Source: Octopus sinensis
Taxonomy: Eukaryota
Assembly (NCBI RefSeq): GCF_006345805.1
Contig: NC_043011.1
Coordinates: 41,242,464 to 41,306,463, forward strand
Length of the DNA: 64,000 nucleotides
Reading direction: 5' to 3'
In this document: positions 5,236-63,800 of the stretch, in pieces
How positions within the stretch are numbered: the stretch's first letter is position 1
Layout: every line of letters starts with the position of its first letter
Translations under genes and position numbers: made by a program
The notes under the pieces: generated by a model
Told to the model about the DNA's origin: nothing
The model's database searches: none
Seen by the model: only the letters and a program-made list of their open reading frames with translations

Positions 5236-5666
5236 CTGCAATGAAAAGATGAGAGAAAAATAAAAATTATTACACACACACATATCTCTTTTACTTGTTT
5301 CAGCCATTTGACTGTGGCCATGCTGGAGCACAGCCTTTTGTTGAGCAAATCGACCCCAGGTCTTATTCTTTGTAAGCCCAGTACTTATTCTATCGGTCTC
5401 TTTTGCCAAACCGCTAAGTGATGGGGACGTAAACACACCAGCATCAGTTGTCAAGCAATGCTAGGGAGACAAACACATACATACATATACACACACACAC
5501 ACACATATATACGACAGGCTTCTTTCAGTTTCCGTCAACCAAATCCACTCACAAGGCATTGGTCGGCCCGGCGCTATAGCAGAAGACACTTGCCCAAGAT
5601 GCCACGCAGTGGGACTGAACCTGGAACCATGTGGTTGGTTAGCAAGCTATTTACCACACAGCCACT

Positions 5667-5764
<98 letters not shown>

Positions 5765-34938: not shown

Positions 34939-35947
34939 CGTCGTTGGTTACGATGACGAGGGTTTTACTTGACCCAGTCAACAAAACAGGCTACTCATTA
35001 AAATCTTTTCTACTCTAGGCACAAGGCCCGAAATTTTGGGGGAGGGGGCCAGTCGATTAGATCGACCTCAGTACACATCTGGTACTTAATTTATCGACCC
35101 CGAAAGATGAAAGGAAAAGTCGACCTCGGCGGAATTTGAACTCAGAACATAAAGATAGACTAAATACCTATTTCTTTACTACCCACAGAGAGGACAAACA
35201 AGGACAGACAAACGGATTAAGTCGATTATATCGACTCCAGTGCGTAACTGGTACTTATTTAATCGACCCCGAAAGGATGAAAGGCAAAGTCGACCTCGGT
35301 GAAATTTAAACTCAGAACGTAGCGGCAGACGAAATACTGCTAAGCATTTCGCCCGGTGTGCTAACGTTTCTGCCAGTTCGCCGCCTTTAGTCTGCTCGTT
35401 AAATTAACGAGCAAGTGGCTGAGAACTCTACAGGGACGTATATCTTTAACGTAGTACTCAAGGAAATTCAGAGTGATACAGGGTATGACAAAACTGGCAC
35501 TTCGAAATACAGATACTACTCCGTTTTGCCATCAGGGGAGATAACTGTGCATACAACCCCCACCTCCTTAGACCGGGATCGGTCGAACAAAAGGAAGGTA
35601 GGCGAAGTATGCGTGCGATAGAAGGTCACAGAAGAGTGAAACATGGCAAAACAGTTGTGTGAACAATGCAAGAATACAACTTGGATGAAACATGCAGGAG
35701 AATGTCTGTTTTTGTAGAGAACGAAATGTGTGATACACAGAATCTGAACTATGGCAGAACAATTGAAAAATACAATGCAAATATGTACAAGGAAAGAACC
35801 GTTCAGCAAAGAAAGGTGTCCGATGAAACAGAACAAAGTATATATGTACAATGATGCAGAAAGAGAGGAAATATGAATGCGGTGTCTATAACAAACATAA
35901 GTCTATTCTCCGGATCAATCACTGGCGAGGCAAAGTTAAGAAATGTA

Positions 35948-36377
35948 GGCAATCTTTCGTCTCTAGTAGACCTTTCCGTCGATTTCCGTAAAAAAATTTT
36001 TTTTTTTACATATGGGCTTGCGGAAACTTTTGAAGTAATGAGAGCGAAAGAGACTAAGAGAAAGCGATTGTATGACGAGGGAAGTTCTTTTGAAGTTACC
36101 GTGCATGGCAAGCATTGATGTATATGTGTGTGTGTGTGTGTTTGTGTGTTTGATAGGGTGTGGGAGACAGACAGTATGTTGTGTAAGTGAAGTGCTTCTG
36201 TTAGTGTGTGTGAAGAGATAGAGTAATGTGTGAAAGAAAGAGATAACTGAAATTTTTTACTCGGTGTATGTGTATATGTATGTATATTACTTCAAAAGTT
36301 CCCGCAAGCCCATATGTAAAAAAAAAAAAAATTTTACGGAAATCGACGGAAAGGTCTACTAGAGATGAAAGATCGCC
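35948..36377. mobile_element. MITE with ~90-bp TIRs and 8-bp TSD GAAATGTA (Merlin-like), copy 1
   Basis: Ends GGCAATCTTTCG...TGAAAGATCGCC; identical GAAATGTA at 35940-35947 and 36378-36385. Confidence 0.9.
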
Positions 36378-39426: not shown

Positions 39427-39510
39427 ATGGCGACAACAACGAGGGAAGTGATAACCCTTCAGCTTGGTCATTATGCTAATTACGTCGGAACACACTGGTG
39501 GAATATACAG
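39427..39510 (+). CDS. MSTO1: Misato homolog exon 1
   Basis: [28 protein letters not shown] then gtaagt; tubulin-like Misato N-terminal motif LQLG...G.HWWN.Q. Confidence 0.96.
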
Positions 39511-39715: not shown

Positions 39716-40110
39716 GGCGATCTTTCGTCTCTAGTAGACCTTTCCGTCGATTTCCGTAAAAAAATTTTTTTGTTACATATGGGCTTGCGGGAACTTTTGA
39801 AGTAATATACATACATATACACATACACCGAGTAAAAAATTTCAGTTATCTCTTTCTTTTACACATACTAACAGAAGCACTTCACTTACACAACATACTG
39901 TCTGTCTCCCACACCCCATCAAACACACACACATGTACATCAATACTTCCCATGCACGGTAACTTCAAAAGAATTTCCCTCGTCATACAATCGCTTTCTC
40001 TTAGTCTCTTTCGCTCTCATTACTTCAAAAGTTCCCGCAAGCCCATATGTAAAAAAAAAAATTTTTTTACGGAAATCGACGGAAAGGTCTACAAGAGACG
40101 AAAGATTGCC
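39716..40110. mobile_element. Same MITE family, copy 2, opposite orientation, TSD ACATACGT
   Basis: Same TIRs, internal sequence reverse-complemented relative to copy 1; ACATACGT at 39708-39715 and 40111-40118. Confidence 0.9.
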
Positions 40111-41052
40111 ACATACGTTTTGAGGGTGTAGATTACAATTATGCTGATAACATTAAGAAAGAGTTTTTAAAACATTTTTAATCAATCATTTCCTTGCCTC
40201 CCGACATTGTTTCCTGATAACTGTCTTTAAAATGTATATCTTGAAATAGCATTTTGCATAGATATATTTTCGAGAGTCAAGATTATAATCATACTGATAA
40301 AATTTAGAAAAATGACAAATAGTTTTCGAGGTGTTTCGGTTCTGTTCTACCTTTCTCTTGCACCCCCCATCGACTTGGTAACCATGAATTTCCTTTAACT
40401 TTTTTTTCCCCCTTCGGATTCGTATATTCGAAATATCAACCTTACATGGTCTAGATTCTTGCAGACATTTCTGCAAAATAATCATTTGCAAATTATTTAA
40501 ATTAGTTATCAAGAAACCATGTCTGCAGTGGGATGTATGGAGACTGTTCTAAAACTTATTGAAAAAGAAAAAAATAATACTCGTCAATGTAGTCGCCATA
40601 CATACATATAGCGAGAGATTCAAACATATCTCTGTAAGTTCTCGTTGCGAAAAATAAGCATTTCCAGAAAGTTCTGAAGAAACAGAATCAATAGAGGGGC
40701 ATGATTCTGTAGTTATATCTCATGTCGCCGCTCCAAGCGTACCTTCTATTAATTCCTTTCACATCTAGGGTGCTTTATCACAAATATTCTAGTGTTTTGT
40801 GTACCCCTTCTCGCTTCATTTGCCTCCCATGTACCTGGATGTCTGTGGAAGTGTTCGGTTAGCCATCGTGCAAAGATTTGTATGTTGATCGAACAGACCC
40901 TATTATCAAAGACATTCCAGCTGTGACCACCTCATCATTTCTTCAGTGTTTCTGTGGCTGTCTTGTATGTTCTTTCCGGTTGTTATTACAGGAATGAGAG
41001 CTGATGCGCTTGTTTGTTATTACTTGACATTTCAAAACGAGATGAACTACAT

Positions 41053-41125
41053 GCCTCCATAGCTCAGTGGTTAGAGCACTGGTCTTGTAAACCAGGGGTC
41101 GTGAGTTCGATCCTCACTGGGGGCT
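41053..41125 (+). tRNA. tRNA-Thr(UGU), intronic in MSTO1 intron 1
   Basis: 73 nt; acceptor GCCTCCA/TGGGGGC, D stem GCTC/GAGC, anticodon arm CTGGT-CT TGT AA-ACCAG, T arm GTGAG-TTCGATC-CTCAC. Confidence 0.95.
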
Positions 41126-44918: not shown

Positions 44919-46084
44919 CATACACATAAACACAAACACACATTTCTATGTGAAATAATATTTCAAAATCTGCTTTGGGTTCAAATCCCACTGAAGTCAG
45001 CTGGTCCTTTTGTAAACATGTTAATTTATGTTCCAAACACTAGCTTAATAATAATAACAAAATTATTTTACTAAATTCTTGATAATTTTCAAAATTGATT
45101 GAAACACAGGTTCTATATTTCAACAGAAATATGGTAACAAAAGGGTTAAAGTGATCCTAAATTAAAATCTTCCATCAAAATTTCATGTTAATCTATGTTT
45201 GAAAGACCAGATGAATATGGATAAAGTTATTTTGCCAAATTCTTCATAATTTTAAAAGCTGTCAATTTAAACAGAAATATGCTAACAAAAAGCGCCAAAG
45301 TCAATAAAAGTTAAAACTTTTCATCAAAATTCCATGTTAATTTTTGTTCCCAACACCAGTTGAATAATGAGACATTCAGGTTAGTTTTCTGGTTTGCAGA
45401 TATCCTTCCACCCACCCATTTCAGGGGCTCTGTAAAAGCTCAAAGTCATTGCCTTGGTCCCTGATTAACCCTTCAACATTCAGATTACTCTGTCGAATGT
45501 GATGATTATTTATTCACATTGTTTCGAATTAATCATGCATTATCTCAGAGCTTTGAGATTTCGATGATGTGATTGTTTATTTTTACAATGACATTGTAGG
45601 GTAGGTGTGAGAAGCTAGATCTGGTCTGTTTGAACATAGAACAGGGAAAATATTTGGGCCAGATTTGGCCAGTTTAATTCACTAGCATTTAGACAGGCCA
45701 TATTTGGTCAAGATATTCTATTTGTTTTATGGTCAAACTGATCAGATCAGGCCTCTCACACCTACCCTACAATGTCATTCTAAAAATATACAATCACATC
45801 ATTGAGATCTTAAAGCAACAAGATCATCCATGATTAATACATAATAATCCTTTCTACTATAGGCACAAGGCCTGAAATTGCTGGGTAGGAGACCAGTCGA
45901 TTACATCAACCCCAGTTGTTTTACTGGTACTTATATTATCAACCCCGAGAGGATGAAAGGCAAAGACGACCTCGGTTGAATTTGAACTTAGAATGTTAAG
46001 ATGGGCGAAATGGTGTTAAGCATTTTGCCTGGCGTGCTAACAATTCTGTCAGGTTTGCCACCTTGATTAATTCAAAATAATGTG

Positions 46085-46480
46085 AATGGCTGTGTGGTAA
46101 GTAGCTTGCTAACCAACCACATGGTTCCGGGTTCAGTCCCACTGCGTGGCATCTTGGGCGAGTGTCTTCTGCTATAGCCCCGGGCCGACCAATGCCTTGT
46201 GAGTGGATTTGGTAGACGGAAACTGAAAGAAGCCTGTCGTATATATGTATATATATATATGTGTGTGTGTTTGTGTGTCTGTGTTTGTCCCCCTAGCATT
46301 GCTTGACAACCGATGCTGGTGTGTTTACGTTCCCGTTACTTAGCGGTTCGGCAAAAAAGAGACCGATAGAATAAGTACTGGGCTTACGAAGAATAAGTCC
46401 CGGAGTCGATTTGCTCGACTAAAGGCGGTGCTCCAGCATGGCTGCAGTCAAATGACTGAAACAAGTAAAAGAGTAAAGAG
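46085..46480 (+). mobile_element. tRNA-derived SINE family A (representative)
   Basis: GGCTGTGTGGTAAG...GGGTTCAGTCCC head, central microsatellite, AGTAAAAGAG tail; similar copies about 1925-2312(+), 5290-5665(-), 11480-11858(+), 20065-20890, 24150-24520(-). Confidence 0.85.
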
Positions 46481-48951: not shown

Positions 48952-49041
48952 GAGTCCTCTTTTGAGTATGATCCCTCCAAAGTGAGTGGTCCTTCAGAAA
49001 TCAACCATGATGTTCTGTACCGCGAGGGAAAAAACTTGAAC
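48952..49041 (+). CDS. MSTO1: Misato homolog exon 2
   Basis: ttacag/gtaaga, 90 nt; ESSFEYDPSKVSGPSEINHDVLYREGKNLN. Confidence 0.92.
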
Positions 49042-49971
49042 GTAAGATATATTATAGAAATCATTTCATAACAAACCAGGACTATTACTGTTTATTTTTT
49101 TTCTTTTCTTGTTGTTTTCTTTTACTTTGTATATTTTATTTATTGTTTAACAAAAAAAAAAAAGGAGTGGGGTGCATAGTCAAGTGGTTTAAGAAGCAAG
49201 ATTTACAACCACATAGTTTCAGGTTCAGTCCCACTGCACAGCACCTTGAGCAAGTGTCCCACAATTATAGCCCTGTGCTGACCTATACCCTGTGAGTGAA
49301 TCTGGCTGATGGAAACTGTGTGGAAGCCAGTCATATGTATACACAATATCTAAATGTATATGTGTGTATGTATATATATATATATATATGTAAAAGTAAA
49401 AAAATATACAAACTGGGACAAGAACGTGAAACATTTAGAAGACGACACAAAAAACACGGACGGGACATTCGAAGTCCTCAATCATCAGTCAAGAACCGGA
49501 TCATCTTCGCAATTTCGGCTGATTAATCTTGTGTGTGTGTATCTCTATATGTGTCTGCTGTGTTTGTCACCTCAACCATGTTGGTTTGTTTACATTCCCA
49601 TAACTTAGTTAAGTAAAAAAAAGGCACCAAAAAAACAATAAAATAAGTATCGTGTTTAAAAAACTGGGTTAATTAGTTCAGTTAAAACCCTTTATCTTTC
49701 TCTTATTATGTGTATGTATTTCTTAAGATGTATCTTTGTATTATGATGTATATTTTACGATGTGTTTTTCTCCTATGTGTGTGCTGAGATGTGATGTATT
49801 TTTATGATGTGCCTTTGTGTTATGATATCTTACGATCTGTTTTTTCTCTTATGTGTGCGCTGTGAGATATGATGTGTCTTTGTGTTATGATGTGAATCTT
49901 ATGATGTGTCTTTGTCTTATATTGTGAAGTGTGGTGTATGATTAATCTCTGCTGGTTGATTCTAATTTCAG

Positions 49972-50087
49972 GGGCAGGTAACTTTTACTCCCCGCCTTAT
50001 TTTATGGGACTTGAAAGGAAGTTTACACTGTTTAAAGAAAGAGGGCACCCTTTATGATTTCAGGATAAAAAACAGGCCAACAGAATG
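49972..50087 (+). CDS. MSTO1: Misato homolog exon 3
   Basis: tttcag/gtaaga, 116 nt; GQVTFTPRLILWDLKGSLHCLKKEGTLYDFRIKNRPTE(W); family motif TPRL...DLKGSL. Confidence 0.96.
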
Positions 50088-51340
50088 GTAAGAATTTCAT
50101 TTTGTTTATTTATTTATTACTTTCATCTTTGTTTTATTTTATTGATTTATCTATTTTGTAAATATTTCTCTGTTGAGACGAGACAGTTTGAACACCATCA
50201 TCATCATCATCGTTATCATCAGTTAAAGTCCGTTTTCCATGCTGGCATGGGTTGGACAGCTTAACAGGAACTGGCAAAGCCAGGAGCTGGACCAGGTTCC
50301 ATAGCTTGTTTTGGTTTGGTTTCTATGACTGGATGCCCTTCCTAATGCCAAATATTCCACTGAGTGTACTGGGTACTTTTTACACAGCACCAGCAACCAC
50401 ACCAATGTTTTTTTTTTTTACATGGCACCTTGGTTTTAGGATTTCAATTCTGCTGTGGTGGCCAGGTCTTCTCAAGTACAGCAATGCACCACATATCTCA
50501 TCCCTCTGCCATCTCCTTAGATTGACCTTCAATAATCCATCTCATGTCTTCCTTGTTCTCCTTCGTCCACACCTTCCTTCCATTTCTCTATGCAACTGCA
50601 TCACATGACCAAACGCAGCACAGTCTCCTCTCTTGCACACTGCATATAATACCTCTTACACCTAACTTTTCTCTCATGCATTATCAACTTTGTGGTTAGG
50701 AATTTGAAATCTGCACTGGACATTTTTATCGTAGTTTCAATTCTCAGGCAGGGTGGTGCATTGTTTTCTTGAGTAAAACACTTCTTTTCATGTTGTTCCA
50801 GTTCCCTCACCTCTAAAAGAGTTCCAGCAATAGATGGGAAGTTAACCCTGCAATGGACTAGCTTCTTATTCAGGAGGAGGGAGTGTTGTAGTTTCAGTCA
50901 CTTCTGTGTCCAGGAGACTGGGTTAAGCCCTGGTCTTATGAGTCCTGGGGACACGTGACTGGCCAAAGTCTAAGTTACTGAGCAGGCATCAGTCTTTCAA
51001 TGCAGTGGCTCCCAATAGGAGATGATTCGGACTTTGATGACTCCTCCAACCCATGCCAGCATAGAAAGCAGATGTAAAAATGCTTGCAATCACTGCCGCC
51101 ACGCCACCAACAACCTGCATTTTATCAAAATCTCTACTTCCTACCAGAATTGGCAGATTTATATAAGGGAAAGCATGATAAGACTCTAAGATTCAGTGTT
51201 GCTCCAGTATGTCTTGCCATACATATTGCTCAAGTATGTCTTGCAACATATATTGTTCAGGTATGTATTGTTATACACATTGCTCAGGTGTGTTGTATGA
51301 CATTTGTAATTCTAGGTTTGTCTTCTTGTGTTCTTGCCAG

Positions 51341-51416
51341 GCATGGAAATGTGACTGTGAAAAAGAAACCAAAGATTGAAAAAAATGAATTTCTCAAAGA
51401 CATTGAGAAACAGGAG
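51341..51416 (+). CDS. MSTO1: Misato homolog exon 4
   Basis: tgccag/gttggt, 76 nt; (W)HGNVTVKKKPKIEKNEFLKDIEKQE; alternative donor 4 nt downstream possible. Confidence 0.85.
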
Positions 51417-52615
51417 GTTGGTATTGTTATTGGAAGTGTGATTTGAGTGAGATTTGACTGCTGTTTCTAGGCGTTTGAGCCACCACCTAGAGGCTTGTTT
51501 GTTGATTTAGTATTTATTATAGAAGTTGATTTTGTAAGTAGAATAGTTTCATTATCATCATCATTATTGTTTAACATCCACTTTCCATGCTGGCATGGAT
51601 TGGACGGTTTGAATGAGGACTGGCAAGCCTGAAAGGCTGCACCTGGTTCCAGTCTGACCTGGCAGAGTTTCTACAGCTGGATGCCCTTCCTAACGGCAAC
51701 CACTCCGATAGTGTAGAGGGTGCTTTAACGTGCCACCGACATGAGGGCCAGTCAGGCGGTACTGGCAACGGCCACACTCTAAAGGTGTTTTTTACGTGCC
51801 ACCTGCATGGGAGCCAGTCCGGTGGCACTGGCAATGACCATGCTCGAATGTTGTTTTTCATGTGCCACCAGCACGTGCTAGTAAGGTGACGCTGGCAACA
51901 ATCACGCTTGAATGATGCTTTTTACATTCCACTGGCATGGGAGCCAATCAGCAGCCCTGGCATCGATCACATTTGGATGTTCTATTAACGTTCCACTGGC
52001 ACAAGTGCTAATCAGGCGGTACTGTCTTCGGCCACGTCTGCGATTTTGATTTCACTTGCCTCAACAGGTTTTCGCAAGCGAAGTTTGAATGTAGAAAACT
52101 TTTCTAAAGTCTAGAACCTCACACTACCTACACTGTTATGGATTCATGAGGTAAGCTCTTTGTTGTTGCTAGATCTGCTAGAAAAAGCAGTCAATTCTCC
52201 TTCAATTGACACCTTAACTGGTTTATGTATGTATATATATATATATGGGTAAGCACCAATGAGGGAGACCTCTACTGTCTGATGGATAGATGGATTTTCC
52301 TTCTTCCCTCCCTCCCTACCTACCTCCCTTCCTCCCACCCTTCCTCCCGCCCTTTCTCCCTCCCTACCTCCCTTCTTTCTTTCTTAAATCACATCATTAC
52401 TATCTTTTAAAAGAAAGGGAAGGACCCATTATATATATCCTAAAGATCCTCTCTCAAGTTGGGATGGTCATGGTTTGGATTCTTTTGATCCTGTGCCTGC
52501 CTTGTCTGGGTTGACCTAGGGTTAAATGACAACAACTTTGGTGATGTAAGTCTTTGCCAGTGTCTTTATAAGATCCACTGACCACCTCTCTTTACCATTG
52601 TTTATATTCTGCCAG

Positions 52616-52697
52616 GAATGTTACCACGTCCCCAGTGAATATGAAGAAATGGAAACAGAATCTGCAGAGAATTCTAAAGAAATGGAAACATTGGAAG
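52616..52697 (+). CDS. MSTO1: Misato homolog exon 5 (acidic, poorly conserved)
   Basis: tgccag/gtaaaa, 82 nt; ECYHVPSEYEEMETESAENSKEMETLE; phase 0/1 bridges exons 4 and 6 exactly; no recognisable homology. Confidence 0.6.
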
Positions 52698-53399
52698 GTA
52701 AAACTAAAAAAATATTTTTTTTTTGTGTATGTACTATTGGCACCAAGTATGTGCATGTATGTATATATATATATAATAGACCAAAGTGTACGTACTCCGC
52801 TATATTTATATAAAAAGGAATACCAAAAATGAGACAAGAATGCAAAACATCCAGACAGATGATACAAAATAGGGACAACAAAACATCCAGGCAGACAATA
52901 CAAAAAAACAAGGATGGGTCATTCGGAGTTTTCTTTCTTCAGTCAAGTTCCAAATTATCTTTGCAATTCTGGCTGGTTATACTCGAGATTGCTCCAATCT
53001 GGCCAGCTTAATTTAATTCGTAGAGGACCAGGATATGTGGCATATTGGTGTACTTGAGAAGACCCACCCGCCACAACAGAATTGTGATCCTAAAACCAAG
53101 GTACCATGTTAAAAGCATTGGTGTGGGTGCTGATGTCACCTAAAAAGCACCCAGTACACTCTGTAGAGTGGCTGGCATTGGGAAGGGCATCTAGCTACAG
53201 AATCCAGGCCAAAACATTCTATAGACTCTGGTCTAGCTCCTGTCCTTGCCAATTCCTGTCAAGCAGTCCAACCCGTGACAACATGGAAAATGGATGTTAA
53301 ATGATGATGATGATACAAGAATATATTGTTGAGTTCATACATATACACTCATACATGCATACATGCACATGTATATACACATACATAGATACATGCATA

Positions 53400-53870
53400 C
53401 TGTCAGTATTCCAACACCTTTCTCCCACACGGAAATTGAAAACCCTCAATGCTACACTCAACTATTGTTATATCAACAGCCTTCTATGCCTGTGAAGCCT
53501 GGAAGAAGACAGTGAAGATCTCTCAATTGCTGGGTGTGTCCCATTGGCACTGTCTACGTTCAATCCTGAGTATGTCTTGCCAGGAGAGAGGGAGAAACAA
53601 AGAGGTGACGAGAAGAGCTTGCTTGGAATGTTTGCAGCACATGGGGACTATGAGGTGGATACGGTTTACTGGCCATGTGTTTCGACTACCGCAAGAGAGA
53701 TATGCTGCCAGTGTGATGGAGTGGATGCTGGGAGGAGGAGGAAACAGACGGAGGAGAAGACCAAGGAAGAGGTAGTACAGTATATTCCTGGACAGCATGA
53801 TAACGATAGGAGTCAGCCTGAGTGGAGCCATGAGGAAGATAAGCAACTGGGTTGTCTGGAAAAAGCTTGT
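53400..53870 (+). mobile_element. RTE-type LINE C-terminal fragment
   Basis: AFYACEAWK...HWHCLRSIL...RWIRFTGHVFRLPQERYA...RRRPRK. Confidence 0.75.
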
Positions 53871-54741
53871 ATAATACTGGAGGTTCTAAGAGCTAAGATA
53901 TATATATATATATGTGTATGTATGATATATGATATATACATGATATATGATAATACATATGTGTATGTCACCGTCACTGTGACCGACCAGGCTATCAGAT
54001 GTTGCTACACATCACTGGTCACAATGCGCTTCGCATTGTTTTAGCCTTCAAATGACGCCACCCCGCTGGCTAAGCGGGCAGGCCAACAGAAGAAAGAGTG
54101 AGAGAAAGTTGTGGCGAAAGAGTACAGCAGGGATCGCCACCACCCCCTGCCGGAGCCTCGTGGAGCTTTAGGTGTTTTCGCTCAATAAACACTCACAACG
54201 CCTGGTCTGGGAATCGAAACCACGATCCTACGACTACGAGTCCGCTGCCCTAACCACTGTGTATGTATGATATATAAATTCCCTACTGGGAAGGACCAAC
54301 TTTAAGAGAATCTTACATTGCTTATAAACTTTACATTTGGATGGACTCATATTAAACTGTTGGACTTTTGAATTTTACTCAAAGGATATTGGAATAATAC
54401 ACATATATACCATTATGCCTATAAAACGGATTTATGAACTCAATAACCATACATATCTTACATCTATTTTCTTTCCTCCACCTCACTCTCTATTTGTATC
54501 ACATCGAAACTATCTATAACTAAACTTTTCCTCTCACACCATCTCCGATAAAGGGATATTATTATTAATTAATATCCTAGAAACAGCTGTAAGACCTTCT
54601 ATCTATAAATGCTCTAATATATATATACAGCCTTGGTCTTTTTATCTCATTACACAAAAAATTCATATGTATGTATTTATATGTATATGTTGTTCCATTG
54701 TTGCTCTTTTCACCCCTGTTGTCATTATATCCTGGTTATAG

Positions 54742-54898
54742 AGATCAACAAGAGGGAAGAAACAGACGGAAACGAAGAATGCAATTCTGGCGACAAAATC
54801 TACAACTTGGATGATTCCACTGAAGTTTGGTCTGATTTCCTCAACATCCATCTCCATCCAAAAACGATCAACATTATTAATGATTACACCCACAAAAG
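54742..54898 (+). CDS. MSTO1: Misato homolog exon 6
   Basis: ttatag/gtacag, 157 nt; ...YNLDDSTEVWSDFLNIHLHPKTINIINDYTHK; motif VWSDFL..HLHP. Confidence 0.93.
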
Positions 54899-54950
54899 GT
54901 ACAGTCCTTTATTATTAGACATGGTTTCTTTTGTTCTCTTTGTATTTAAG

Positions 54951-56340
54951 ACTAGCAGCTAAGCCCAGTTTCACCCGGTCGATTTGGATGATGTGTCTGT
55001 AAAACCTGTTCTGTGTAAGCATTCGACTTGTTTGGGCACGCTTACATTTTAGAATGACTTTTTTCGATCAAAACACTAAAAATAACTAGCCAACAAAAAA
55101 AAAAGACAACCAAGATTCAACCAACTCAAAAAATAACCCAAATACTAAGCGAACAAAGATGAACCATCCCTCTTCCATTGCGCATGCACACACAAACACG
55201 CACACACACACACACATTCACATACTCCCCTCTTTTACATACATGCACATATTCACACAGAGTTGAAATGCTGTTTGATTTATTTTTTCAGTGTACAATT
55301 TCCATCATCCCACTACCAAGTATGACATCACCCTTTCCTTCCTTATTCATCTAGCACCCCTTCCTTTCTCATTCATAAACATTATGTATGTTTTATTATT
55401 GTAGATTATTATTATTATTATAGTATTATTATAGTAGATTAGCTCGGTAACCATGGGAGCTATGAAAAAATTCAAAGCCCAGCCACACCACCGGATCATT
55501 CTACACATTTTTCGTGCAATTCCACCCAGCCGTTTGACCGTGAACCTCAAGACAAGAAAGAATCGCCCATGTCAAATTTATATATACACAAGAATACAAC
55601 GACCACCCATGTCCAATTTATGTAACAGATGACTTTAGTCAGTGTAGAACAATAGTTGCATAAATATTTTTCATTATTTTTCCCATGTTCATTTTAGTCT
55701 ACAATTCCTATAAGCTCAAAAACGCATATGAGCTTGCTGGTATTCGAACCTCAGATCAAGCAGTTTCAACTTGTGCAGGCTAAGTGACTTAATAAGTATC
55801 CAAACATACATGTAACCTTGAGACAGAAATCAGTTGACACCTTTTGACATGAAGCAGCTTGCATACGTTGCCAACTTCTCGCGGCATGTGAATCATTAAA
55901 TCCTTCTGCGCTTTTAAGCTCAGCTTAGTGCAAAATAGAAAAAAAATTGAATCCTAATTTTTTCTTCCTTTGTACTGAAATTTTTGAAAAGCGAGCCTTC
56001 CCCATTATATGTAGAAAAAAATCGCTCTATTTCACAAAATTGGTTTGATCAAAATCACCCAATTCACAGCTGAATGGCAGGTGCAATCACCTTTGAATGG
56101 GGAATTCCATTAGAAAAAGTTTTAATCAATTTTCTCAGTAACTATGGGGGCTAGGAAAAAAATACAAAAGGCAGCACAATCTATGGACCCGTCTCCACCT
56201 GTGTGCCATTTTCCATGCAAATCCACCCAGCCGTTTGACTGTGAACCTCAAGACGAGAAAGAAAGAATACAAGAATACAACGATCGTCCATGTCCAGTTG
56301 ATATAATAGATTGAGTGTGTAGAGCTGTAACTAAATACAT
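54951..56340 (-). mobile_element. Helitron-like non-autonomous element with internal duplicated block
   Basis: Minus-strand 3' end CCGGGTGAAACTGGGCTTAGCTGCTAGT; block CCACCCAGCCGTTTGAC repeated near 55524 and 56223; distal boundary approximate. Confidence 0.55.
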
Positions 56341-56582
56341 TCCAGTCGTGACTATCTCATCTTATTTTCAGATACAGAGTATCTAGAGCCAGGTTTTTCT
56401 GTGTGTCTTTTATTTTTTTTTCTTAATTTATTTATACAATGATAAATAGTGATATATGTGTGTGAGTGTTGCCATGTTTGATCGCTAAATCCACAAGTTT
56501 CTTTTTTATTCTGTCTCTATTTATTTCCTCATACTCCTTTCTGTTGAAGAGCATAGGCTCGAAACATAAAAGACTTTCTCAC

Positions 56583-56829
56583 TAACTGGTGATGATGATG
56601 ATGGTGTTCAAACTGTCTCGTCTCAACAGAGAAATATTTACAAAATAGATAAATCAATAAAATAAAACAAAGATGAAAGTAATAAATAAATAAACAAAAT
56701 GAAATTCTTACCATTCCGTTGGCCTATTTTTCATCCTGAAATCATAAAGGGTGCTCTCTTTCTTTAAACAGTGTAAACTTCCTTTCAAGTCCCATAAAAT
56801 AAGGCGAGGAGTAAAAGTTACCTGCCCCT
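56583..56829 (-). pseudogene. Inverted duplicate of MSTO1 exon 3 plus first ~135 nt of intron 3, inside intron 6
   Basis: Reverse complement of 49970-50225; exon part 56712-56827 differs at 5 of 116 nt; AG acceptor and GTAAGA donor retained. Confidence 0.95.
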
Positions 56830-57435
56830 TGTTCATACACCTGTCTTCATCTTTTCTTTTTCTGTAAATTTCAACTATATATACATACACACTCACTTGG
56901 TCCCTAAACCCTCACCTATTTTTCTTTTTTCACACTCCTCCTTTATTTTCCTTCTGATGAATGACTAATATCCGAAACTCTTTCCCTTCCTTTTGTAAAT
57001 CAAATTAACACATTTGTTAAAATTCGTCCTTCCTATGATGACTTTTTCTTTCTATATTTCAAAATACTTGTAAATTACTTATTAATAATTTACTTATAAA
57101 ATTATATATTAATGAGTTACTTTTCAGCCACTCTGTATATGTATGTATGTATATATATATATATATATATATAAAAATATGTACTGTAAATTTAGGGTGA
57201 ATAGGGTATCTAACAATGCATGCAGCTGAAGAGAGCTTTAAACCATCTTTTATATCTATTATACACTGATGTAAGAACAGGTCGTTTATAAAGCTTGAAA
57301 CATGTGTACCGCGACATCCTTTGTGTTCTGTTTTTGATTTTATTTGATATATATATATATATATATATATATAGATGTCGGTACGTACATATATGTTTTT
57401 ATGTATGCATATATTTTATTTATTACACTATATAT

Positions 57436-57480
<45 letters not shown>

Positions 57481-57493
57481 AATTGTTTTCCAG

Positions 57494-57611
57494 TGAAGAA
57501 CAACCATTTGATGTGTTTGGCTCTGGTTATGAGACCATGTCTGGTACCGACATATGGGCTGAGATGGAGGACAGACTTCACTATTTTACTGAGGAATGTG
57601 ACATGTTACAA
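57494..57611 (+). CDS. MSTO1: Misato homolog exon 7
   Basis: ttccag/gtaagt, 118 nt; EEQPFDVFGSGYETMSGTDIWAEMEDRLHYFTEECDMLQ. Confidence 0.96.
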
Positions 57612-58625: not shown

Positions 58626-59190
58626 GAAAATGGACGTTAAATGATGAGGATGATGATGATGTAAAACTCTGCATACATAGATCACTGTGTTACTGTATCA
58701 AGTAGACTATCGCTTGTTGTTATACACCACTGTTCACAATGTGTTTCCTTGCATCATTCTTGCTTTCCAAATGCTGCCACCTTGCTGGCTAGGCATGCAG
58801 GCCATCATTCCACTTGAATGGAATGGTCGTCCTTTGCAAGGTTGTCCATTTACAGCTGAGTGGACTGGAGCAACATGAAATGAAATGATTTTGTGCAAGA
58901 GTGCAACACGCTGCCAAATACGGGAATTGAAACCATGACCACAAGATTGTGAGGGCAACACATTAATCATTTAACTATGTGCCTTTATGCATACACACAT
59001 ATCTGTACCTGCGCACACACACACACACACACACATGTGCTCATATACATGCATACACACACACACATCTATAAATGCACACACACACACATGCACAAAA
59101 ACGCTTACACAAACTCATATACACATCTGTACATGCACACCCACACACACACATTCATACAAACACATGCTCACATACACACATATATAT

Positions 59191-59408
59191 CATCATCATT
59201 TAACGTCCGTTTTCCATGCTGGCATGGGTTGGACGGTTTGACTGGGGACTGACAAGCCAGGAAGTCGCACCAGGCTCCAATCTGACCCGGCAAGGCTTCT
59301 ACAGCTGGATGCCCTTCCTAACATCAACCACTCCAAGAGTGTTGTGGTTGCACTTTACATGCCACTGGCACAAGGAGCCAGTCAGATGGCACTGGCAACA
59401 ACCCACGC
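59191..59408. mobile_element. SINE family C with (GAT)n tail (representative)
   Basis: CCATGCTGGCATGGGTTGGACGG...GGATGCCCTTCCTAA; many copies, e.g. about 10460-10600, 18640-18880, 42890-43175, 48700-48840, 51555-52080, 60871-61090, 61995-62330. Confidence 0.8.
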
Positions 59409-59758
59409 ACATGTGCTCACATACATGCATATATGCACATCTCTACACAGATACATACACATATCTAAACATGCACACATACACACACAAACACGCATGC
59501 CCACCTCCACACACTCACACCTCTACACAGATACACACACATATCTAAACATGCACACATACACACACAAACACGCATGCCCACCTCCACACATCTACAC
59601 ACGCACACACACACGCACACACACACACACACACAACACACACACACACACACATGTGCCTGTGTGTGTAGCAGTCTTTCTAATCCCGTCAATCTGTCAT
59701 TTGTTAATTTTTAAATTTTTTCTTTCTTCACTGATTTTCTGTCCTTGTGTTTTTGCAG

Positions 59759-59890: not shown

Positions 59891-60658
59891 GTAAGCCTGA
59901 CCCCTTTTTTTTTTTATTTATTTAATCAATACACTGATACAGCTGTAGGGGCCTAGAGGGTGGCCCTTTTAGAAATAGCAGCCCATTTTTACTGCTGGTT
60001 ACATTTTATTGGTTTAACAAAGAAGCATATATTGGACAATACGAGCAGATGGGGTGGTCATGGCTGGAAGGCCTTTCATCATAAGTCTGCTTTTACAGAA
60101 TTGATCTGGAGCTAAATAACTCCAACAGAAGTCAGTAGCTTTGTGTTGTGGCTACTACACACACACACCACACACACACACACATAGGTACTGGTGTGGC
60201 TGTGTGGTTAAGGAGTTTGCTCCCCAACTGTGAGCTTCCAGGTTCAGTCCCACTGCATGGCACCTTGGGCAAACATCTTCCACTATAGCCCCAAGCCAAC
60301 CAAACCGTTGTGATGAGTGGATTTAGTAGCTGGAAACTGTGTGGAAGCCTGCCATACATGTGTGTGTGTCTGCATAGTCGTAAATGAGTGTCACTGTCAT
60401 ACAAGCAGTGTCATTCATATCCAATATTCTGTGTAAAAGATGTCTAACCACGATAAAAAGATATTACCTTGCTTGAAAACTGCTGAGTGTTGGCAACAGG
60501 AAGGGCATCCAGCTGTAGGAAATCAGCCTCAGTAAACTCTGTCCAACCTATACAAGCATGGCAAGATGGCTGTTAAATGATATGATGATGACGGGCTTCT
60601 CTCAGTTTCCATCTCCCAAATCCACTCACAGTATAAGAGGGAATCTGAATGTGTATGC

Positions 60659-61679
60659 CAGCATTTCTCAACCGGGTTTTGCCGGAACCCTAGGCTTCTG
60701 CAAAAGGTTCCTAGGGGTTCCGTGAGAAAGAGTGAGATAAGCTAATGTTAATTTTATGATTGTAATATTACTATACATGCACAACATATATTATTGTTTG
60801 TTGTAATATTGGCTAATTCCAGTCCTGCCTGACTGGCTCCCGTGCTGGTGCACACAATAAGCACCATGCATGCGTGGGTTGTTGCCAGTGCCATCTGACT
60901 GGCTCCCTGTGCCGGTGGCATGTAAAGTGCATCCGCAACACTCTTGGAGTGGTTGGCGTTAGGAAGGGCATCAAGCTGTAGAAGCCTTGCCAAACCAGAT
61001 TGGAGCCTGGTGCGACCTCCTGGCTTGTCAGTCCCCAGTCAAACCGTCCAACCCATGCCAGCATGGAAAACGGACATTAAACGATGATGATGATGAGGAT
61101 ATATATCATCATCATCATCATACATCCGCTTTCCATGCTGGCATGGGTTGGACGATTTGACTGAGGTCTGGCGAACCAGACACCAATCTGATCTGGCAGA
61201 GTTTCTGCAGCTGGATGCCCTTCCTAATGCCAACCACTCCAAGAGTGTAATATATATATATAAATAGGGGTTTGTATGATTGTGTATAGTGGGATATATA
61301 TTATTCAAAGGAATTCCAACTGTCTGTTTTTTTATGTTTTGTTTATATTCTTTATAATATTAATGTAGAATATAAATAGTATATATAGTAAAATGAAATA
61401 AAGTATTGATTGTCTTATTGAATAGATGAAATATTGAATATCAAATATTAAGGGACTAGTATACTTTCTTGCATTAAAGCAGTCTTCAAGGTCCCAGGTT
61501 GTGACAGGAGTGTTTCAACTGTGTATATATATATATATATATATGATATTTTTAACATAAACTGCAATGAAAAAATATGAGAAAGATATGGTATATATTT
61601 TTTTTTTTGTGCAGGGGTTCCTTGAGACATGTAATTTATTTTAAGGGTTACACAAGGGTAAAAAGGTTGAGCAACACTG
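60659..61679. mobile_element. hAT-like MITE with nested SINEs
   Basis: Ends CAGCATTTCTCAACC / GGTTGAGCAACACTG; TSD GTGTATGC vs GTGAACGC. Confidence 0.65.
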
Positions 61680-62469: not shown

Positions 62470-63800
62470 GTCCTGACGGGTCTTCTCATTCACAGCATAT
62501 TTCCAAAGGTCTTGGTCACTAGTCATTGCCTCGGTGAGACCTAATGTTCGAAGGTCGTGCTTCACTACCTCGTCCCAGGTTTTCCTGGGTCTATCTCTTC
62601 CACAGGTTCCCTCAATGGCTAGAGTGTGGCACTTTTTCACACACCTATCTTCATCCATTCTCGCCACATGACCATACCAGCACAATCGTCTCTCTTACAC
62701 ACCATAACTGATGTTTCTTAGATCCAACTTTTCTCTCAAGGTACTTACACTCTGTCGAGTATGAACACTGACATTACACATCCATCGGAGCATACTGGCT
62801 TCATTCCTTGTGAGCTTACGCATATCCTCAGCAGTCAGGGCCCATGTTTCACTGCCATGTAGCATGGCTGTTCATACACATGCATCATACTGTCTACCTT
62901 TTACTCTGAGTGAGAGGCCTTTTGTCACCAGCAGAGATAAGAGCTCTTTGAACTTTGCCCAGGCTATTCTTACTCTAGCAGTTACACTTTCAGCACACCC
63001 AGGTAACGGAAGCTATCAACTACTTCTAGTTTTTCTCCTTGGAATGTGGCGGAAGTTGTTCTCTGCACATTTTCTCAGTGTTTCCAAAGGTCTTGGTCAC
63101 TAGTCATTGCATCTACCATTGCATCACTTTTTCACACACCTATCTTCATCCATTCTCGCCACATGACCATACCAGCGCAATCGTCTCTCTTACACGCCAT
63201 AACTGATGCTTCTTAGATCCAACTTTTCTCTCAAGGTACTTACACTCTGTCGAGTATGAACACTGACATTACACATCCATCGGAGCATACTGGCTTCATT
63301 CCTTGTGAGCTTACGCATATCCTGAGCATCTACCACACACAAAAACTATCTTCCTAGTTAGCCTTCGTTTGACATTGCTGCACCTCTTATGTGTCCATAG
63401 TTTACACTGGGTACATCTTATAGAGTTTCTACCTATGCCTTTTCTACAGATCGAGCAGGGCCATCTACCTGAAGGCGTTTGTGGTTTGTCTACCTTCCTA
63501 CATATTAGGACTTTGGTTTTAGCTCGGTTGACTCTAAGGCCCTTCGATTCTAATCCTTGCTTCCACACCTGAAGCTTCTCCTCCAGTTCTGATAGTGACT
63601 CAGCAATTAGAGGAACTCCCAGGGGCATCCTGTCTTGAATTCCTCTGTTATTGCCTGGAGAACTATGATAAATAGGAGGGGGCTGAGTACTGAACCTTGG
63701 TGGACCCCTTCCTCTACCCGGAATTCTTCACTGTACTCATTGCCAACCCTCACCTTACTAACAGCGTCCCTGTACATGGCTCGCACAGCTCTCACTAACC
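62470..63800 (-). mobile_element. RTE-type LINE fragment, internally rearranged
   Basis: RT motifs GVHQGSVLSPLLFIIVL, ESKGLRVNRAKTK, WYGHVARMDEDRCVKKC; ~200-bp internal duplication. Confidence 0.9.

Follow-up and report, generated by a model that had tools for sequence, protein, structure and literature searches.

A young inverted copy of exon 3 in intron 6 of the octopus MSTO1 gene as potential double-stranded RNA-forming material

Introduction

RNA helices of more than ~100 bp are deaminated promiscuously by ADAR enzymes, and selectivity for single adenosines comes from bulges and loops within the helix. Duplexes between an exon and an intronic editing-complementary sequence (ECS) are found in classical ADAR targets, e.g., at the Q/R and R/G sites of GRIA2 and in insect Syt1 (PMC5705066), and long intronic duplexes were described to be hyper-edited and to recruit ADAR (PMC3479170, PMC4053975, PMC5654063). 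In human, 78% of the edited Alu elements have an inverted partner within 1 kb (PMC4053975). Here, we analyzed a stretch of 64,000 nt from Octopus sinensis (contig NC_043011.1; in the following "the window"), in which an inverted copy of exon 3 of the misato gene MSTO1 lies in intron 6 of the same gene.

Inverted duplications of genes are also known from other RNA-based systems: Drosophila hairpin RNAs (hpRNAs) and young plant MIR genes arose when their target gene was duplicated in inverted orientation, and they constitute separate loci whose transcripts are processed by Dicer. Furthermore, complementary sequences in flanking introns are an established driver of exon circularisation. The origin of exon-pairing editing guides is, to our knowledge, essentially undocumented, the known ECSs being old and their origin obscured. 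An inverted exon copy that resides in its own gene and has diverged by 2% would be a natural experiment on the action of ADAR on a newly double-stranded coding exon.

Results

An inverted copy of exon 3 differs from its source by five transitions

A repeat search of the window revealed an inverted repeat with two arms of 240 nt, which match at 235 of 240 positions (98% complementary) and are separated by 6,380 nt. The arms and a possible extension are as follows:

49970-50209, + strand: arm 1; it contains the acceptor AG (49970-71) and exon 3 (49972-50087) and extends over the initial 122 nt of intron 3 up to the end in an (ATC)n run
56590-56829, − strand: arm 2, the inverted copy of arm 1 in intron 6; its pseudo-exon reads ...KKESTLYDFRMKNRPTEW
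56583-56589, − strand: putative continuation of the copy (CAGTTAC / TAACTGG), corresponding to the final bases of the short interspersed nuclear element (SINE) adjoining exon 3 if a 9-nt microsatellite gap is allowed

Apart from 56590-56829, the exon-3 region has no second copy in the window (blastn, E=1e-116). Gapped megablast lengthened the match to 56583/50215, and with the (ATC)n run contracted by 9 nt, the homology continues to CAGTTA at 50225/56583. The initial annotation, which was made from the letters of the window, had described 56583-56829 as the reverse complement of 49970-50225; repeat search, blastn and gapped megablast agree with this once the microsatellite gap is included.

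The gene containing both arms is encoded on the + strand and belongs to the misato/MSTO1 family: its exon peptides match the misato proteins of Pfam PF10644 and PF14881 with E-values down to 1e-82, the homology to Misato segment II (PF10644) and Tubulin_3 (PF14881) is colinear over the exons, and exons 1-3 translate to the misato N-terminus. An alignment of the exons with misato proteins contained 35 invariant columns. Both the gene name and the intron that had been assigned initially are supported by the Pfam matches and the exon placement, which put the copy in intron 6 (54899-57493), 1.7 kb past exon 6 and 0.66 kb ahead of exon 7.

Within the exon part, gene and copy differ by five transitions, exactly those named before and now verified base by base. 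They are given in sense orientation (gene/copy), together with the base standing opposite in the pre-mRNA:

49992: C/T, CCC>CCT, opposite A (A56807)
50044: G/A, GGC>AGC, opposite U (U56755), a wobble pair
50067: A/G, ATA>ATG, opposite C (C56732)
50073: C/T, AAC>AAT, opposite A (A56726)
50082: A/G, ACA>ACG, opposite C (C56717)

The facing bases also substantiate the earlier statement that two exon adenosines stand opposite C. A50067, part of the Ile codon ATA with a 5' U neighbor (UAA context), forms an A:C mismatch with C56732, and its editing would mean an Ile>Met exchange. A50082 (Thr codon ACA, CAG context) forms an A:C mismatch with C56717, where editing would be synonymous. On the intronic arm, the adenosines 56726 and 56807 lie opposite exon C50073 and C49992, resulting in C:A mismatches. 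The copy features a CpG at the site matching 50082, and the ACA/ACG difference at this position may reflect CpG decay on the gene side.

A 240-bp duplex dominates the predicted fold

Both arms are part of one transcription unit and, according to the folding predictions, able to pair over 240 bp with 98% complementarity, this duplex being the dominant structure of the fold. Co-folding of the arms yielded −398 kcal/mol, compared to −45 and −41 kcal/mol for the arms alone, and the minimum free energy fold of the region 49900-56900 retained 238 in-register arm pairs, 112 of them within exon 3. The initial proposal of a duplex of ~250 bp over exon 3 and its donor, closed by a loop of ~6.4 kb, is thus in line with the co-fold as well as with the 7-kb fold. 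Even with introns 2 and 3 removed, the exon-only duplex still gave a net value of −149 kcal/mol. Counting G:U as paired, the helix consists of uninterrupted runs of 22, 74, 5, 8 and 127 bp with single mismatches between them, and it spans exon 3 including both splice sites, so that the acceptor AG and the donor GUAAG are predicted to be buried.

The arrangement shares with ECSs that an intronic sequence of the same pre-mRNA is complementary to the exon, and the imperfect helix in which bulges and loops bound short stems and provide selectivity is not seen in runs of this length. Likewise, the two inverted copies predicted to form a long and near-perfect duplex in the same transcript correspond to those of a hyper-editing substrate, whose partner typically lies at 1-2 kb or less and not at the 6,380 nt found here. 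The introns 3 and 6 carry reverse-complementary sequences and flank exons 4-6, as described for circular RNAs (circRNAs). A scan with Rfam gave no RNA family in or near either arm.

The copy is a young, non-coding duplicate

The copy includes 122 nt of intron 3, which shows that it is not a processed retrocopy, and it is devoid of poly(A). Its two flanks have at most 5 nt in common, i.e., there is no target-site duplication, and neither of them (56312-56589 and 56830-57127) recurs elsewhere in the window. At the distal side, the duplicated segment ends in a repeat:

50197-50520, − strand: an old copy of a SINE of which the window contains >20 others (72-79% identity); the distal breakpoint of the duplicated segment lies in the (GAT)n tail of this copy

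Homology of the copy into the SINE body was not significant, as 1280 of 2000 shuffles reached the score. The divergence of the arms (5/240), set against the 72-79% identity among the SINE copies, indicates that the duplication is much younger than the SINE, and the ~2% by which the copy differs from its source argues for a recent origin. At the proximal side, the end of the copy coincides with the boundary of intron 2 and exon 3 within 0-2 nt. The junction retains the genomic AG and four Gs with 3 extra nt, which is not an exon2-exon3 splice junction; the flank contains the 5-nt sequence TGAAC, the same as the end of exon 2.

Among the five differences, a Gly>Ser exchange is the only one that is polarized by the alignment. 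Nine misato proteins, which come from molluscs, an annelid, an insect and a fish, all have Gly83, and the Ser in the pseudo-exon is derived in the copy. It follows that no coding constraint acts on the copy, which, being young as well, is a decaying pseudo-exon. The Ile/Met column at 50067 is variable in the misato alignment and cannot be polarized there.

Three candidate sources were rejected. A processed retrocopy or LINE-mediated insertion (LINE, long interspersed nuclear element) does not agree with the 122 nt of intron 3, the absence of poly(A) and flanks with ≤5 nt in common. An origin by SINE 3'-transduction or retroposition does not agree with homology in the tail only, a non-significant match in the SINE body and the absence of target-site duplication and poly(A). 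Finally, a spliced exon2-exon3 RNA as source is not compatible with the junction.

The absence of poly(A) and of a target-site duplication, the unique flanks and the intron sequence contained in the copy point to a templated inverted insertion at the DNA level as the most economical explanation. In this scenario, ~247 nt spanning exon 3, ~122 nt at the beginning of intron 3 and the microsatellite tail of the adjoining SINE would have been copied recently and in inverted orientation into intron 6 of MSTO1 itself, as a non-coding duplicate. This would have happened by templated insertion or inverted duplication, e.g., by template switching or break repair. Either process could have been primed in the microsatellite.

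Structure of MSTO1 and database searches

Exons 4, 5 and 6 were placed with the misato transcript of a relative (Logan SRR27666079, L001; 61% identity). Exons 4-7 all have ag..gt borders and consistent phases, and exons 4-6, which add up to 315 nt (a multiple of 3), are all located between the two repeat arms:

39427-39510, + strand: exon 1
about 48952-49041, + strand: exon 2
49972-50087, + strand: exon 3, 116 nt, encoding GQVTFTPRLILWDLKGSLHCLKKEGTLYDFRIKNRPTE(W), with 38 adenosines, 27 of them recoding if edited
51341-51416, + strand: exon 4, 76 nt
52616-52697, + strand: exon 5, 82 nt
54742-54898, + strand: exon 6, 157 nt
54899-57493, + strand: intron 6, carrying the exon-3 copy
57494-57611, + strand: exon 7

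In a set of 5.8 billion proteins, no octopus MSTO1 protein or transcript was found; the top named relatives were misato proteins of bivalves and gastropods with 45-47% identity, next to the Logan transcript with 61%. The set thus yielded neither an edited isoform nor a close outgroup. An exact look-up of three open reading frames (ORFs) spanning the copy or intron 3 in an assembly index returned none on record, and an exact 27-mer from exon 3 had zero matches in metagenome contigs. Within the exon-3 homologue of the Logan transcript, at about 240-255 of L001, a 1-nt frameshift splits the ORF into P0002 and P0020; either an A-run was misassembled here or the variant is real.

Further repeats in the window

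Several other repeats are located in or close to MSTO1. An inverted SINE pair (59189-59417 / 60860-61091, 92.7% identity) brackets exon 8, which ends at 59926; being closer together, it is a plausible pair for promoting double-stranded RNA (dsRNA) or circRNA formation in the same gene, equally so as the exon-3 arms. A further inverted repeat of ~435 nt (35943-36377 / 39716-40114, 88.7%) brackets the promoter region and exon 1 (39427-39510). In intron 6, just upstream of the exon-3 copy, a direct repeat (55443-55630 / 56134-56311; 68% overall, 91% in 57-nt cores) suggests an earlier local duplication in this intron. Downstream of exon 9, a direct repeat of 204 nt (62630-62833 / 63125-63328, 98% identity, 495 nt apart) was not called tandem by Tandem Repeats Finder and is another very young local duplication. 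A repeat family of ~400 nt (1929-2311, 5286-5667 and 46084-46480) shows about 91% identity, occurs in both orientations and is younger than the common SINE. Finally, intron 1 contains a tRNA-Thr with the anticodon TGT (41053-41125, + strand, 71 bits in Rfam).

Discussion

The element described in this study is real: a small and unusual inverted duplication of an exon within its own gene and, as such, latent dsRNA-forming raw material. On balance, we consider it fairly probable that it is a young templated inverted duplicate; as raw material, it is most likely neutral or slightly deleterious and did not evolve as a site-specific guide. Judging from the sequence of the two arms, the A:C mismatches appear to be by-products of ordinary transitions after the duplication and not designed features. 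In fact, any transition between the arms gives either an A:C/C:A mismatch or a G:U/U:G wobble, and at least two exon-side A:C mismatches among five transitions are expected by chance with P about 0.37.

If the MSTO1 RNA folds as modeled, it might be open to attack by RNA-editing enzymes. Considering the biochemistry of ADAR, the runs of 127 and 74 bp would assign the duplex to the promiscuous hyper-editing class and not to the site-selective guides, and with 27 recoding adenosines in exon 3, Ile>Met would consequently be only one of up to 27 possible recodings. Provided that nuclear ADAR activity is high in this coleoid and the duplex forms before intron 6 is removed, promiscuous clustered A-to-I editing could be expected on both arms, with the A:C sites 50067 and 50082 being somewhat favored. 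Side effects on the splicing of exon 3 would also be possible. The formation of the duplex is, however, uncertain, as the partner arm is transcribed 6.4 kb later and closer inverted SINE pairs are predicted to compete.

The initial annotation went further and suggested that the gene had made its own editing guide by exon duplication. The exon-intron duplex within one transcript and the two adenosines in A:C mismatches were recovered in our analysis, whereas a purpose-built, site-directed guide does not agree with the chance expectation, the long helix, the 2% divergence and the 6.4-kb loop. A functional ECS of this kind, which would direct ADAR to recode Ile>Met at 50067 along with clustered editing and would be kept by selection, is therefore unlikely in our view, even if the A:C mismatch at an adenosine with a 5' U is real and Ile/Met recoding by an exon hairpin aided by an intronic duplex is known from Gabra-3 (PMC3479170). 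Besides the automatic appearance of A:C mismatches from A/G transitions and the 27 recoding adenosines exposed in the promiscuous helix, neither conservation nor selection is apparent for the copy, as reflected by the Ser at Gly83; the Ile residue lies in a variable stretch of misato, and the loop is long in comparison to the human edited Alus. Moreover, no paper that connects misato/MSTO1 with editing in cephalopods came up in our literature search, and there was no entry in the searchable supplements. Some observations do, however, weigh against a neutrally decaying duplicate of DNA-level origin, and the distribution of the differences also counts in favor of the ECS. All five differences fall into the 116-nt exon part and none into the other 124 nt (Fisher 0.025; 0.09 if weighted by G+C sites, 47 vs 29), codon position 3 accounts for four of the five (binomial P=0.045), and four of 39 third positions compared to none of 124 intron positions are affected (Fisher 0.003, in a test chosen post hoc). 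This clustering in the exon and at third positions is not predicted by simple neutral decay and might hint at selection or gene-side substitutions; with n=5, it may reflect chance, synonymous substitutions on the gene side or selection. Against an origin at the DNA level, the proximal breakpoint is unusually close to an exon boundary for a random DNA break and could mean that an RNA served as template. A variant in which the copy was an ECS from birth, i.e., the gene made its own ADAR guide by inverting an exon into a downstream intron, appears quite improbable. Here, the ancestral base would be preserved in the copy. Any exon position that subsequently mutates from G to A would then automatically face C, the most favorable context for ADAR, and be restored in the RNA; the differences ATA/ATG (50067) and ACA/ACG (50082) would both be of this type. 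Such a restorative effect has been put forward in the "harm-permitting" model of coleoid recoding (PMC6881472), for which the locus, if this scenario was true, would provide a concrete mechanism in cis. An effect mainly on RNA processing is improbable as well. The repeat could promote back-splicing of exons 4-6 into a circRNA or, by burying the splice sites, the skipping of exon 3, which would shift the frame as this exon comprises 116 nt. The position of the arms (arm 1 reaches 122 nt into intron 3, ahead of exon 4, and arm 2 follows exon 6 within intron 6), the coverage of both exon-3 splice sites and the general role of complementary flanking introns in circularisation are in favor of such an effect; on the other hand, arm 2 is transcribed 6.4 kb past exon 3, when introns 2 and 3 are perhaps already spliced, and the many closer inverted SINE pairs compete.

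Regarding the origin of the copy, a partly processed or edited MSTO1 pre-mRNA could have served as template for repair or reverse transcription, in which case the two A>G differences would represent fossil editing. The breakpoint at the exon-3 boundary, the flanking TGAAC shared with the end of exon 2 and the fact that two of five differences are A>G in sense direction are consistent with this idea. We nevertheless regard it as rather improbable, as the junction with its genomic AG, four Gs and 3 extra nt differs from the exon2-exon3 splice junction, neither poly(A) nor a target-site duplication is present, the remaining differences comprise two C>T and one G>A, and the CpG on the copy side at 50082 fits better to CpG decay on the gene side. 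Errors in library preparation or assembly can also yield small inverted duplications, by which the inverted segment would be the product of a chimeric or mis-joined read. Artefactual palindromes are, however, normally identical and adjacent, whereas the copy carries five substitutions and a 9-nt microsatellite indel relative to its source, lies 6.4 kb away and has unique sequence on either side, which makes an artefact very improbable. A templated insertion at the DNA level followed by decay of the pseudo-exon is the reading that we favor.

The MSTO1 copy could show whether events of this kind are tolerated and whether they alter splicing or circularisation. If nothing is edited, it would represent a small intragenic inverted duplication of no consequence, which is still a mapping hazard that can fake editing calls. 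Reads from the copy that are mis-mapped to exon 3 would mimic A>G changes at exactly 50067 and 50082; the same reads would bear three further changes (C>T at 49992, C>T at 50073, G>A at 50044) and appear antisense in stranded libraries. Due to this hazard, only junction-spanning or uniquely anchored reads are valid for editing calls at this locus.

Comparison with known systems

As in classical ECSs, e.g., those of GRIA2 and Syt1, an intronic element of MSTO1 is able to pair with one of the coding exons of its own pre-mRNA, and any editing has to take place before the intron is removed. Classical elements are, however, short, imperfect, conserved and close to their exon, whereas the MSTO1 duplex comprises 240 bp, is paired to 98%, has its partner 6.4 kb away and represents a young exon duplicate known from its sequence and predicted fold. 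Another similar case is the I/M site of Gabra-3 (PMC3479170, PMC4053975, PMC5654063), which shares with MSTO1 the Ile>Met recoding (predicted in the latter) and a long intronic duplex. The edited adenosine of Gabra-3 belongs to a short hairpin that the exon forms locally, and a separate, ADAR-recruiting helper, the long and hyper-edited duplex, is located ~150 nt away; in MSTO1, the exon itself would be one strand of the long duplex.

Loci of hpRNAs and proto-miRNAs resemble the MSTO1 copy in that the inverted duplicate of a gene part leads to dsRNA perfectly matching this gene. They differ in that the MSTO1 duplicate resides inside an intron of its parent gene and that ADAR, not Dicer, would be the expected reader. 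With circularisation-driving flanking introns, the locus has in common that its arms in introns 3 and 6 bracket exons 4-6, except that one arm also covers an exon. Inverted Alu (IRAlu)-type hyper-editing substrates likewise consist of two inverted copies in one transcript giving long dsRNA, which is edited promiscuously and in clusters. In contrast to these, the repeat unit of MSTO1 is a single-copy coding exon and not a transposon, and the spacing amounts to 6.4 kb instead of mostly within 1 kb; in terms of helix geometry, IRAlu-type substrates are the best-fitting class for the MSTO1 duplex.

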